Sequence record: MH791411.1
Strand: one strand, 5' to 3'
Length of the DNA stretch: 64,000 nucleotides
Shown here: positions 11,733 through 64,000 of the stretch, piece by piece
Position numbering within the stretch: position 1 is the first letter of the stretch
How the letters are laid out: every line of letters starts with the position of its first letter
Program-made: the position numbers and the translations under genes
Notes under the pieces: model-generated
What the model was told of the DNA's origin: nothing
The model's input: only the letters and a program-made list of their open reading frames with translations
The model's database searches: none

Positions 11733-12173
11733 TTATTGTAAAACTTTGAGTTTGTAAAGCATTCCTTCACAAAAACTCATAATGTCTTCTAGCGTGTTAG
11801 TACTACCATAGTCTTCAGCCTCTTCTAGCATAGCATGAATGGCTTTACATTGACTAACATATTCTTCAAGAATTGGTACACAATCCTCGATAGGGGTAAA
11901 ACGATAACTGTTACCAGTACCTACCTGCAATGCCCCGCGAGTGTTCATAATACCCTCTACAAATGCATCAACGTACTCAGGTAACTCTTTGTATAGTTCA
12001 TCCAATTGTAGGTGCTTCGTGTAGAAATGGCTCTGTAAATGCCAGTTGTGAGCAGCAGCACTTAAAAATAAACTATTCTCAATAAATGTAAGTAGTACTT
12101 CATCATAAGAACTATCTTCTTCAGTATCTCCGATAAAGTCCATTACATGTCGTAAATCATTAATATTTTCCAT
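11733..12173 (-). CDS. ferritin/Dps-like protein
   Basis: AHNWHLQS...HLQLDELY-EL---VDAFVE ferroxidase-type pattern. Confidence 0.75.
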   Translation of the reverse strand: MENINDLRHVMDFIGDTEEDSSYDEVLLTFIENSLFLSAAAHNWHLQSHFYTKHLQLDELYKELPEYVDAFVEGIMNTRGALQVGTGNSYRFTPIEDCVPILEEYVSQCKAIHAMLEEAEDYGSTNTLEDIMSFCEGMLYKLKVLQ

Positions 12174-12203: not shown

Positions 12204-12632
12204 TTAGTTAATAATAAAGGTAACTTCAGGATTCATTTCTGAAACTGCATTTCTCTTACTTCTATTCCATAGTACTCTATTGTTATATAATGAAGAATCA
12301 CAAATTATAAGTAAGCAATTCCTTAATCTACTTACAGTACTTTGATTACTTAAATCAGTTTCTGTAACAAAAAATACATTATCAGGAACTTCTACAGGAA
12401 TTGATTTATCAAAGAAGAAAACTACAATAGGTCTGTTTGTATGAACTAAATTAATAAAGTCTAAAATACTGTTATAAAATTCAGTTCCTTTGTTTAAACT
12501 TAATGGATCTTTGATTCTCTTCAAATAGGTCTGAACCAAATTATGATCGCTTTTGATTTGATACTCAAAATATTCTTTGAATAACATTTGTGTTAATTCA
12601 GATGTATTGGATATTTTCGTTGTGTTACTCAT
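12204..12632 (-). CDS. hypothetical protein
   Basis: 142 aa ORF directly downstream of non-coding element copy 1. Confidence 0.7.
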   Translation of the reverse strand: MSNTTKISNTSELTQMLFKEYFEYQIKSDHNLVQTYLKRIKDPLSLNKGTEFYNSILDFINLVHTNRPIVVFFFDKSIPVEVPDNVFFVTETDLSNQSTVSRLRNCLLIICDSSLYNNRVLWNRSKRNAVSEMNPEVTFIIN

Positions 12633-12718
12633 TCACTTCGTTCTCTCGTAACTCAAGAAGTCACTACGTTTACTTCGTAAACTAGTTCCTTCTGAAAATG
12701 ATAATGTACTTTAAAAGC

Positions 12719-13287
12719 TTGACGGGATTTGTTGAGGACTATTTCATCCCCCCGCAGGGGAATGAAGGTAATAAAAAAGAGACAATTAAGTCTCTCTTGA
12801 CGATGATGGCATCGGATATTATCGAATTGCGAATTTCTCAAATTTTGGACGGATCTTTCCTGTACCAAAATTTAGAGAGCGAAAGCGGGTTGCTCGGTTT
12901 CTCTCTATCGCAGTCATATGCAACGGTCGCTGGTCTTTTCATCAACAGCACTCAGTACTAAACTCTATTCGATCAAAGTAGTACCTGTTCTCAAATTTTG
13001 GACGCAACTTTCTTGTAAAATCGCGTCCACAATCCTTGAACTCCCTTAGCAAATTCGTAAGGTGCGAACCTTATACATCTATCTAGGAACTCTCTGTGTG
13101 CTTATTGGAGTTCTTTATACAGCCGTGTCGCCGTGATTCGTGGTCTTATCTCGTGTTTGTTTGATTGCCAGTACTCTAACAGGTTTCTTTTGCTGTTCGC
13201 TACAACGGTAAAGCTCATCTATCCTTTACATTTTCAAGAGAAGTAGGTTCTCATTATCCATTTTTCAATGTCCGTTGTCATTTTACA
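12719..13287 (-). ncRNA. candidate large structured ncRNA, copy 1 (about 570 nt, family not recognised)
   Basis: gene-free gap; multiple blocks nearly identical to 63533-64000; stems with G-U-compatible changes on minus strand; own promoter motif at 13294-13321. Confidence 0.7.
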
Positions 13288-13293
13288 ATATAC

Positions 13294-13321
13294 ATTATAT
13301 CACTAGGATGTATTATGTCCC
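13294..13321 (-). promoter_or_regulatory. putative promoter for the ncRNA candidate
   Basis: GGGACAtaatacatcctagTGATATAAT. Confidence 0.7.
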
Positions 13322-13322
13322 G

Positions 13323-14131: not shown

Positions 14132-14743
14132 TTAATTGTGATTATTCAATTTCTTTTGTTCTTTTTTTAGAGCTTTCATATGTCGTCCAAAATCACGAAC
14201 ATGCCATATATGGTCGGTTTCCCATAGTTCTGTACGTAAACGGCGTTCTTCCAATTCTTCTGGCGTAGGAATTTTAGATTTCTTCTTATCTTTATTGAAA
14301 AAATCATTCATATGTTCTTCCAGTAGATTTCTACCCTTAACTTTTTCCAGGAATTCATCTACTGATTCAGTTTTATTAGAACGAAGACTGTTACAACGTG
14401 AACACATGGTGTTGTAATTTGACTCTAAATCAGGTCCACCCTTAGATGCTAGTTGGTTATGATCTACTGTCATCAGTACTTCATATAGACCACAAACTGC
14501 ATAGACATTTAAGTGAGGTTTACCATATACCGGATCAGTGCTATGTGAACGCTCAATGCGAACTTCAGTGGCTTCAATACCACACGCAACGCATTTACGA
14601 TTCTTAACGAATGTAAGTACTTTTTGTGGGAAGTATCGGAAAGTAACACCGTTATATGTATAGCGTTTCATCTGTGTACTTCTTTGATTTAACTCATCAA
14701 GAAGTGATAGTTTGGCAACATAGTAGACCTGATATTTTGACAT
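14132..14743 (-). CDS. HNH endonuclease family protein
   Basis: CVACG...MTVDHNQLASKGG...NYNTMCSRCN pattern (CxxC, DH, GG, N, CxxCN). Confidence 0.8.
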   Translation of the reverse strand: MSKYQVYYVAKLSLLDELNQRSTQMKRYTYNGVTFRYFPQKVLTFVKNRKCVACGIEATEVRIERSHSTDPVYGKPHLNVYAVCGLYEVLMTVDHNQLASKGGPDLESNYNTMCSRCNSLRSNKTESVDEFLEKVKGRNLLEEHMNDFFNKDKKKSKIPTPEELEERRLRTELWETDHIWHVRDFGRHMKALKKEQKKLNNHN

Positions 14744-63532: not shown

Positions 63533-64000
63533 TTGACGGGGTTTGCTTGAGCATATTTCATCCCCCCCGCAGGGGAAAGAACAAAAAAAGTTTGACGCTG
63601 GTGGCCTTCACATAGTTCATATCACGAATTCTCTTACGAGGCGAAAGCGGGTTGCTCTGTTTCTCTCTATCGCGGTTCTTGTAGCAACGGTCGTCGGTCT
63701 TAAACATCCCGACACATAATACAAATACCATATGACCAGTACTTGTATTTGATTTCACGAATTTTGGACGCAACTATATTGTATAAATTACGACCGCAAA
63801 TTTCTCATGAAATCTCCCTTAGATAATTGGTAAGGTGCGATCCTTATATGTCTATCGAGGAACTCTCTTTATCCTATTGGAGTTCTTTATACAGCCGCAT
63901 TGCCGTGAGTGGTTCAAACTATGCCATCATCTAACGGGTTTCATTTGCTGTTCGTACTGAAAGGACTACTCATCTACCCTCTACTTTTCGAGTGGATTAG
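63533..64000 (-). ncRNA. candidate large structured ncRNA, copy 2 (5' end beyond window)
   Basis: collinear conserved blocks with 12719-13260, e.g. 63641-63676 vs 12879-12914 (34/36) and 63875-63897 vs 13103-13125 (23/23). Confidence 0.7.

Follow-up and report, generated by a model that had tools for sequence, protein, structure and literature searches.

Two gene-free gaps in a jumbo coliphage genome probably encode a large, highly structured non-coding RNA of a new family

The stretch of 64,000 nucleotides (nt) from sequence record MH791411.1 considered here, hereafter called the window, belongs to an Asteriusvirus (121Q/PBECO4-like) jumbo coliphage, and nearly all its open reading frames (ORFs) of at least 100 amino acids (aa) are located on the minus strand. 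Two gaps between these minus-strand ORFs, one at 12633-13322 and another from 63416 to the window end, contain no genes. What occupies these gaps, and why are they similar to each other? The first-pass annotation, made from the letters alone, regarded them as diverged copies of a non-coding element of about 570 nt and suggested an independently transcribed structured RNA. Our analysis makes it very likely that each gap is an independent minus-strand gene for a large, highly structured non-coding RNA, and we hold with good confidence the explanation as a whole, including the assignment of this RNA to a new family of enterobacterial-phage RNAs.

The similarity of the two distant gaps was confirmed. 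Segments 12719-13321 (copy 1) and 63533-64000 (copy 2) align collinearly with 74% column identity, and the shared blocks listed earlier were recovered. When the window was compared with itself by blastn, copies 1 and 2 matched each other (E 2e-44), the other repeat being an internal one of 30 nt, and no third copy was found by this program in the 64 kilobases (kb). A search of the window by nhmmer with the profile of the whole family gave copies 1 and 2 at E 4e-127 and 1e-121, respectively, and no further match below E 0.05. Copy 2 is truncated by the window end; its counterpart in phage EC.P1 extends for about 95 nt more, up to its own promoter, and this remainder (L002 4217-4313) carries the TGATATAAT box at its end. 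The surroundings of copy 1 are 100% identical to those in phages EC.P1, Ecwhy_1 and others and 97% identical to those in 121Q. The initial count of two copies is correct for the window, but the genome holds four, as judged from the relative TH47.

Evidence for a structured RNA comes from the comparison of many copies. Pattern scans of IMG/VR followed by nhmmer gave 65 matches, which were reduced to 48 non-redundant copies (<97% identity), and the alignment used for the test (A2) contained 48 sequences. Structure was searched for as runs of complementary, covarying columns in structure-blind MAFFT alignments. The resulting model consists of 16 helices, 94 base pairs (bp) and 3 pseudoknots, in each of which a hairpin loop pairs with a distant strand. 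The model pairs 92.2% of cells, against 39-43% when the partners are slid by 1-3 columns; 69 of the 94 pairs have changed on both sides (28-36 after sliding), compensatory cells number 743 (79-129 after sliding) and the covariation score is 0.467 (0.06-0.10 after sliding). None of 500 shuffles reached the observed values. Several helices are 100% paired with 3-4 pair types per position, and copy 1 itself rewrites the pseudoknot PK1 as ACAACGG/CCGUUGU, the majority of copies having CUGAUUG/CAAUCAG. In the sequences found later, this model derived from jumbo-phage copies is paired at 86.1% in 7 copies from bacterial genomes (41-46% after sliding) and at 84.9% in 42 further sequences. Folded singly, copy 1 (569 nt) has a minimum free energy of -154.5 kcal/mol with z -5.07 relative to shuffles, and about 110 nucleotides are invariant in the family. 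The element is therefore as highly structured as had been supposed.

The strand was established in another way. RNAalifold, applied to a crude global alignment, did not separate the two strands, so column-pair statistics and counts of G-U and A-C combinations were used. The model pairs include 291 G-U against 92 A-C combinations (about 3:1) and the covarying pairs 86 against 25, the A-C combinations being mostly at helix ends; at several pairs, 34-44 sequences have G-U and none has A-C. Pairing of the model reaches 92.2% on the minus strand versus 87.7% on the plus strand. The minus-strand stem noticed earlier at 13001-13027 corresponds to a hairpin at 12999-13029, whose minus-strand form comprises 13 bp (-17.4 kcal/mol, z -5.95), as opposed to 7 bp for the plus strand. 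The G-U/A-C asymmetry and this hairpin, together with the promoter and terminator described below, identify the minus strand as the functional one.

This asymmetry also speaks against an explanation at the DNA level, in which the conserved blocks would be sites of protein binding or recombination on duplex DNA, serving packaging, partition or attachment for instance, or several plus-strand promoters grouped together. Such an explanation could draw on the co-orientation and spacing of the copies in phage genomes, on prophage copies adjoining integrase genes and on two plus-strand TTGACG boxes with promoter-like spacing to TTTCAT or TATTGT. Duplex sites, however, would show neither compensatory changes nor an excess of G-U over A-C, and the element is unchanged where the integrase type varies between serine and tyrosine enzymes. 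Plus-strand promoters at the two boxes were rejected: both boxes change in parallel to sequences unlike promoters (CTGACG, TTGAAG, TTGTCG, CTTCG), and the '-10' of the second box is a strand of a covarying pseudoknot. A DNA-level site is largely refuted by the strand-asymmetric covariation and seems to us scarcely credible.

Could the gaps hold remains of a protein gene or of a non-autonomous mobile element, such as an insertion sequence (IS) remnant or a miniature inverted-repeat transposable element? The element is multi-copy, dispersed and about 0.6 kb long, and several deposited genomes annotate small hypothetical proteins over it. At the same time, the longest stop-free stretches comprise 50-118 aa, are mostly antisense and differ in frame and strand from copy to copy; the short ORFs overlapping the copies had no match in a PHROG search, and matches found by tblastn between contexts were confined to the RNA region in mixed frames and strands. 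The short ORFs are thus not conserved as proteins, as was first noticed. Neither terminal inverted repeats nor tandem repeats were found at the element, and the synteny of its copies across genera, together with their clustering by position, shows them to be ancient and not recently mobile. The origin from a decayed gene or an IS, raised at the very beginning, was checked in this way and deserves next to no weight.

The element does not match known RNAs either. Rfam 15, searched at the gathering score with the whole window and 6 bacterial loci, gave no match, and copies 1 and 2 and one prophage copy, searched with the limit raised to E 10, showed chance-level short matches to unrelated small RNAs. 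No family had been recognized at first either, and in the Rfam searches there was no match to ROOL, GOLLD, OLE, raiA, HEARO, group I/II introns, RNase P or transfer-messenger RNA (tmRNA). Group I/II introns, RNase P RNA, tmRNA, 6S RNA and signal recognition particle RNA were rejected as candidates, having no Rfam match, and the element is intergenic with its own promoter. ARAGORN found no tRNA or tmRNA, and no description of this RNA was found in the literature searched. VIPR vrRNA arrays, phage guide RNAs built of tandem 5-nt GGYNN units (10.64898/2026.10.15.759431), were also considered and rejected: the element has no tandem repeats, and the pattern of four GGYNN units occurs nowhere in the window.

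The right end of the copies carries a near-invariant ATTATAnCA, i.e., TGnTATAAT on the minus strand, with TATAAT in 47 and TG in 46 of the 48 non-redundant copies. This extended -10 element is also present in most prophage and metagenome copies. In copy 1, the promoter motif first pointed out at 13294-13321 is the top site of the promoter scan. About 515 nt downstream of the start, an intrinsic terminator, consisting of a hairpin and U6-9, is found in approximately 27 of the 48 copies. The signals at both ends of copy 1 are as follows.

13294-13321, minus strand: promoter, the best sigma-70-type site of the region, GGGACA-16-TATAAT with upstream TG, 10/12
13299-13294, minus strand: -10 element TATAAT
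13302-13301, minus strand: TG of the extended -10 element
13321-13316, minus strand: weak -35-like GGGACA
About 13286-13289, minus strand: predicted transcription start
12773-12798, minus strand: terminator, stem 12798-12790/12783-12775 with core AGAGAC/GUCUCU, U-tract to 12773
12719-12766, minus strand: 3' extension with GC hairpin UUCAUUCCCC-UGC-GGGGGGAUGAA (12766-12743) and a tail with the second CGUCAA (12724-12719)

The terminator hairpin of copy 1 (-10.8 kcal/mol, z -4.2) has a covarying stem, GAGAC/GUCUC, GUACAC/GUGUAC, GUACC/GGUAC or GAUCC/GGGUC in different copies, and the last variant has a wobble that can pair solely on the minus strand. A simple terminator scan did not flag this minus-strand terminator, which is supported by folding and conservation. 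An invariant GGGGGG follows just 3' of it. The GC hairpin at 12766-12743 is also stable (-16.9 kcal/mol, z -4.3), and the 3' extension is present in 48/48 copies, terminator-less ones included, as well as in prophage copies. In EC.P1, the 5' end of copy 2 (L002 4225-4290) contains, as a trait of this paralog type, a strong hairpin with a U-run immediately downstream of TATAAT; as far as can be read from the sequence, it would terminate read-through from the upstream gene, and transcripts from the own promoter of copy 2 would begin inside the 5' arm of this hairpin.

Inside these limits, the covariation model gives the following anatomy of copies 1 and 2, listed for copy 1 from the 5' end of the RNA.

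12773-13287, minus strand: core RNA of copy 1 in the covariation model, about 515 nt from the predicted start to the terminator U-tract, ends predicted
13202-13278, minus strand: PK1, 13278-13272 with 13208-13202 (loop of H3), 7/8 pairs changed on both sides
13219-13246, minus strand: H2, conserved loop GAAAAUGUA and then conserved AGAUGAG, 91% paired, 7/8 pairs changed on both sides
13214-13212/13201-13199, minus strand: H3, whose loop is a PK1 strand
13196-13192/13123-13119, minus strand: H4 (region 13119-13196), 98% paired, 4/5 pairs changed on both sides; the region bears conserved GAAACCYGUUAG and CACGGC...CGGC
13182-13179/13134-13131, minus strand: H5, inside H4 along with a hairpin of variable length
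13087-13113, minus strand: H6, GAACUC/GAGUUC in copy 1, wholly rewritten in other lineages, 7/7 pairs changed on both sides
13058-13073, minus strand: H7, UAAGG/CCUUA, with conserved CUNGAUAGA on its 5' side
13041-13048, minus strand: invariant single strand UAAGGGAG (invariant columns of alignment A2)
13041-13038/12990-12987, minus strand: H8, closing variable insertion site 1 (12987-13041), 4/4 pairs covary
13029-13017/13011-12999, minus strand: module hairpin 1 in insertion site 1, loop UUACAAGAAAG
12954-12985, minus strand: H9, long hairpin of about 11 bp with conserved G-U, G-U 102 versus A-C 1
12973-12967 with 12821-12827, minus strand: PK2, AUCGAAU of the H9 loop with AUUCGAU, 95.5% paired, 5/7 pairs changed on both sides
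12881-12950, minus strand: most conserved core, with H11, GACCGUUGC, the 5' arm of H13, H14 and PK3
12950-12948/12930-12928, minus strand: H11
12924-12920 with 12893-12889, minus strand: PK3, 100% paired, covaries
12912-12908 (5' arm) and 12832-12828 (3' arm), minus strand: H13, 100% paired, covaries
12905-12901/12885-12881, minus strand: H14, loop AAACCGAGCAACCCG, 100% paired, covaries
12878-12875/12839-12836, minus strand: H15, closing insertion site 2; region 12828-12878 together with the 3' arm of H13
About 12874-12841, minus strand: module hairpin 2 in insertion site 2
12801-12814, minus strand: hairpin Pk, CGAUG/CAUCG, its 3' arm running into the first CGUCAA (12802-12797)
63533-64000, minus strand: copy 2, 3' four-fifths, with the 5' end and promoter past the window end
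63533-63538, minus strand: tail CGUCAA of copy 2
About 63557-63580, minus strand: GC hairpin of copy 2
63592-63597, minus strand: Pk CGUCAA of copy 2
63647-63653, minus strand: AACCCGC of copy 2
63684-63692, minus strand: GACCGUUGC of copy 2
63774-63783, minus strand: module 1 loop of copy 2
63814-63821, minus strand: UAAGGGAG of copy 2
63981-63989, minus strand: H2 loop of copy 2

Two peculiarities of this anatomy are of interest. The internal direct repeat of 30 nt (12835-12864 and 12988-13017, 90% identical) corresponds to the two hairpin modules with loops UACAAGAAAG and UACAGGAAAG. In the family, this module of 26-30 nt, with loop UACAAUAUAG and 3' arm AUCCGUCC, has alternative sites inside H8 and inside H15; prophage copies contain 2 modules and jumbo paralogs 2, 1 or 0, copy 1 having 2 and copy 2 having 1. 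The other peculiarity is the twin CGUCAA motifs, which in copy 1 lie at 12719-12727 in the tail and at 12797-12805 in the 3' arm of Pk. The Pk 3' arm and the 3' tail share a 5-6-mer in 80 of 82 sequences, an approximate figure, as motif picking favours similarity. Each motif is complementary to the 5' arm of Pk, and from lineage to lineage the two vary in concert (CGUCAG, CGUCAA, CGAAG, CUUCA, CGACA). This points to a possible alternative or intermolecular pairing, or to two putative sites for one partner.

Some observations concern the neighbourhood of the copies in the window. The offsets between copies 1 and 2 in the window and in EC.P1 (PQ657772) differ by 1537 bp, so there must be an insertion or deletion between the copies in these otherwise near-identical genomes. 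The first codons of the minus-strand ORF 12204-12632 (window 12590-12650) align as DNA with the flank AACGAAGUGAA...ACGAAAAU, which is non-coding sequence 3' of the RNA in other copies; either the start codon of this ORF is mis-set or the ORF has been extended into the former flank. According to the annotation of 121Q, an HNH endonuclease gene is situated two genes upstream of copy 1 and a gene of a Dps-like 'starvation-inducible DNA-binding protein' two genes downstream; their window positions (14132-14743 and about 11733-12173, respectively) were obtained by correspondence with 121Q genes 513 and 518.

How widely is the element distributed? Homologs and further copies, to be sought according to the first-pass annotation, were found by blastn and nhmmer across Rak2-like phages and prophages. 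By blastn, the element was detected in 72 deposited phage genomes, every one belonging to a Rak2-like jumbo phage, at 2-5 places in each; the family extends over the whole clade of these phages. The host genera of these phages are Escherichia, Salmonella, Klebsiella, Cronobacter, Erwinia, Serratia, Yersinia, Pectobacterium and Xanthomonas. The complete, unannotated genome of TH47, 99.9% identical to the window here, has 4 copies on one strand at 49, 146, 262 and 345 kb. In 14 genomes or long contigs, the copies within each are co-oriented and spaced by 55-145 kb. In TH47, three copies run in the direction of their neighbours, and the fourth (D) lies antisense between a baseplate-hub gene and the endonuclease VII gene, a position kept in Serratia phage BF, Salmonella phage 7t3 and Erwinia phage Hallingskeid. 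In the Mimasvirus/Eneladusvirus group, copies cluster by genome position and not by genome, so the 4-5 paralogs are older than the genera of this group; in Asteriusvirus and Rak2, part of the clustering is within the genus. Blocks GACCGUUGC and AACCCGCUUUCG are identical across all four paralogs. The idea of diverged paralogs is thus well founded, the four TH47 copies being an example.

Many jumbo genomes have a copy at approximately 0.72 of the genome length, directly 5' of an ADP-ribosylglycohydrolase gene (PF03747; L059 6897-7730, also L025, L028, L036, L041, L043 and L044). Between this copy and the gene, there is a short conserved flank with a covarying hairpin UUGACAUUCGAAGAAUGGCAA.

Outside jumbo phages, a degenerate pattern of the core was scanned on one genome per bacterial species and on JGI metagenomes, followed by an nhmmer filter. 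Full-length copies (E 1e-86 to 1e-118) were found in 9 bacterial assemblies and in 86 of 108 metagenome loci. The assemblies include Citrobacter amalonaticus, a Serratia fonticola chromosome, Serratia sp., Enterobacter chinensis, Silvania hatchlandensis, Buttiauxella and other Enterobacteriaceae, and one of the nine carries the element on a contig that is probably mis-binned. Bacterial copies occur one per genome within a prophage lysogeny module; they follow the integrase gene immediately and in its direction, and are convergent with a gene of a CI-type S24 repressor followed by a cro-like gene. The adjacent integrase is a large serine recombinase in 4 cases and a tyrosine integrase in 2. In Citrobacter, the integrase gene abuts the chromosomal ppdD/hofB genes, and a 165-aa ORF lies 3' of the RNA. 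In S. fonticola, the order is recombinase, ParB, ParB, RNA (convergent) and chromosomal rof/tilS, and two full-length rof genes stand in tandem at the junction of the element with the chromosome (L116 4775-5038 and 5227-5490), which looks like a duplication created by integration at rof. The integrase-RNA-cI arrangement was also found in 11 metagenome loci, most others having jumbo-phage flanks. None of the conserved blocks is missing from the prophage copies, which usually have the extended -10 box as well. A divergent subfamily of 8 loci has a remodelled 5' domain, the same 3' domain and the TGTTATAAT box, and one of these loci adjoins a T4-type baseplate gene. Roughly 90 non-redundant members of the family were collected in all.

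Among 5426 complete E. coli genomes, 2 contain the element, in a small island adjoining ffs with no annotation over the element. In E. coli LR-29-1 (NZ_AP027515 3464971-3493553; L230), the copy is situated in an island of about 10 kb inserted beside ffs, which also carries IS3, a truncated tyrosine integrase, a small serine recombinase and a DUF4326/mSLOG-DUF488-dual-OB gene trio; a homolog of the DUF4326 protein, 40% identical to it, is encoded in jumbo phage TH47 (8619-8927). No copy was found in the plasmids searched or in isolated temperate phages of the phage collection, where the only carriers are Rak2-like jumbo phages.

The arrangement of copies raises the question of whether the RNA acts in cis as an origin or primer RNA, forming an R-loop on its template with the help of the G6 run and priming replication, with copies spaced for a genome of 350 kb. 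The transcripts of ColE1 RNA II and of T4 origins are likewise promoter-driven, several hundred nt long and provided with a G-rich segment, ColE1 RNA II being similar in size, and copies at intervals would suit a large T4-related genome with more than one origin; homology to these transcripts is not known. Jumbo genomes do carry 2-5 co-oriented copies 55-145 kb apart, each with a strong constitutive-type promoter and with the invariant GGGGGG just past the terminator. However, the sole copy of a prophage lies by int and cI in the lysogeny module and not in the replication module, gene orientation does not switch at copies A-C, no iterons or AT-rich unwinding element were seen, and the dense covariation and pseudoknots, with the depth of structural conservation, far exceed what T4 origins need. 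We consider a role as origin primer improbable.

The RNA could also be imagined as a giant riboswitch-like 5' untranslated region or attenuator of a downstream gene on the same strand. An internal terminator followed by conserved sequence would suit such a leader, the window gene starts 87 nt past the tail, and an ADP-ribosylglycohydrolase gene in many jumbo genomes or the 165-aa ORF in Citrobacter stands directly after one copy. Yet downstream genes differ among paralogs, copy D and most prophage copies lack a co-directional downstream gene, their neighbours being convergent, and about 40% of copies have no terminator. As a general explanation, a leader is very improbable. Independence of the RNA gene from its neighbours follows from copy D, antisense in four genera, and from the prophage copies convergent with the repressor gene.

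No protein gene common to jumbo and temperate contexts was found in the flanks examined. With neighbours so varied and no such shared gene, action in trans is probable for this independent RNA, either unaided or together with a host factor, and the retention of ancient paralogs by genome position is a further point for action in trans. Its life may be pictured as follows. Host sigma-70 RNA polymerase would start at the extended -10 promoter (TGnTATAAT with a weak -35), and the transcript would fold into at least 16 helices and 3 pseudoknots around about 110 invariant nucleotides and would end at the intrinsic terminator (about 515 nt) or continue through the GC hairpin and tail (about 570 nt). 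The conserved loops, the two repeated modules and the twin CGUCAR motifs would then bind a host factor or further RNA copies, and the extra copies in jumbo phages may serve dosage. An extended -10 promoter with a weak -35 needs no -35 recognition and could stay active after host takeover (cf. T4 AsiA).

As to the kind of action, an abundant trans-acting scaffold, decoy or self-assembling RNA may be proposed, tentatively, from the features of the sequence. The multiple paralogs suggest dosage or subunit diversity. The int-cI slot is the usual prophage site of accessory genes expressed in lysogens. A more specific and rather unlikely variant is that virulent and temperate enterobacterial phages share a new class of large functional RNA without a dedicated protein, which would be a ribozyme or a self-assembling multi-subunit particle. 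In this variant, the loop-distal 'pseudoknots' and the twin CGUCAR motifs would serve as contacts between molecules or as a switch of conformation, and the 4-5 ancient jumbo paralogs would form homo- or hetero-oligomers. Because of its place in the int-cI slot, the RNA might then also act in phage-phage conflicts or in conflicts with host defence.

Several points weigh against the explanation of the gaps as independent genes for a trans-acting RNA or limit it. The structural model was derived and first tested on the same alignment, a circularity that the later-found sequences remove only partly. About 20 of the 48 copies have no terminator hairpin, and the sequence 3' of the terminator is conserved as strongly as the core, so the mature 3' end is uncertain; the RNA would measure about 515 nt, or about 570 nt after read-through, both ends being predictions, and the longer form agrees with the size given at first. 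TH47 copy C (L007 48047-48584) has no TGnTATAAT, the box being present in the orthologous copy C of 121Q (L085), and may be a decaying or differently expressed paralog. Some copies 5' of the ADP-ribosylglycohydrolase gene may double as leaders, and the uniform orientation with 55-145 kb spacing could hint at a cis or DNA-linked role. Finally, the sequence itself points to no partner and to no activity.

The significance of the independent RNA gene proposed here is determined by the rarity of such molecules. To our knowledge, only about a dozen bacterial and phage RNA classes longer than 400 nt are this densely structured. Such classes have revealed new biochemistry, namely RNase P, group I/II introns, tmRNA and the HEARO/omega RNA guides, and OLE, ROOL, GOLLD and raiA are prominent open problems. 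The family occurs in phages of laboratory hosts of the E. coli K-12 type, and 121Q, PBECO4, phAPEC6 and Sharanji can be had as isolates, which makes this RNA far more tractable than ROOL and GOLLD, and its ancient paralogs, its occurrence both in virulent phages and in the int-cI slot of prophages and its extended -10 promoter are handles on function. The finding also accounts for four 'empty' gaps of 0.6-0.7 kb that are blank or filled with spurious ORFs in more than 70 annotated jumbo genomes.

Among the objects of comparison are the putative long non-coding RNAs (lncRNAs) ncRNA001-004 of PA5oct, a jumbo phage distantly related to the Rak2 clade. They were defined by RNA-seq as transcripts of 236-619 nt, four per genome and mostly from the main coding strand, two of them being very abundant with about 5% of phage reads (PMC7318152). 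Like the new RNA, they are non-coding and several hundred nt long. Comparison of the PA5oct lncRNAs with the family by nhmmer gave no significant similarity (best E 0.5), and they lack the hallmark blocks GACCGUUG, AACCCGC and UAAGGGAG. PA5oct ncRNA004 (L101 652-1102, L102 617-1235) ends in a GC hairpin UUCCUUCCC-AAAC-GGGGAGGAA and contains UAUAGAUUCCGU and GAAACAGAG; these motifs resemble those of the family and follow in the same order, homology being without statistical support. The PA5oct lncRNAs are at most analogues and not evidence for the family.

OLE RNA, a ribonucleoprotein RNA of about 600 nt from extremophilic Firmicutes, is similar to the new RNA in length, complexity and independence as a non-coding RNA. 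In contrast to OLE, the new RNA is phage-borne and not chromosomal, has no adjacent oapA-like partner genes and has no match to the Rfam model.

There is also a likeness to ROOL and GOLLD, large ornate RNAs of phages and prophages that form homo-oligomeric RNA cages (PMC12286853). Like the new RNA, they have about 500-800 nt, many helices with pseudoknots and numerous invariant nucleotides, and they are phage- or prophage-borne independent genes with no obligatory protein-gene partner. The new RNA differs from them in the lack of any match to the Rfam models of either, even with E values up to 10 allowed, in its Enterobacterales hosts (Firmicutes, rumen or lake bacteria for ROOL and GOLLD), in the absence of a tRNA-gene neighbourhood and in its 2-5 diverged paralogs per genome. 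It may be concluded that this is a new RNA family outside those described, which in its broad kind belongs with large ornate phage and prophage RNAs such as ROOL and GOLLD and is set apart from these two by host range, number of paralogs, position in prophages and absence of sequence relation.

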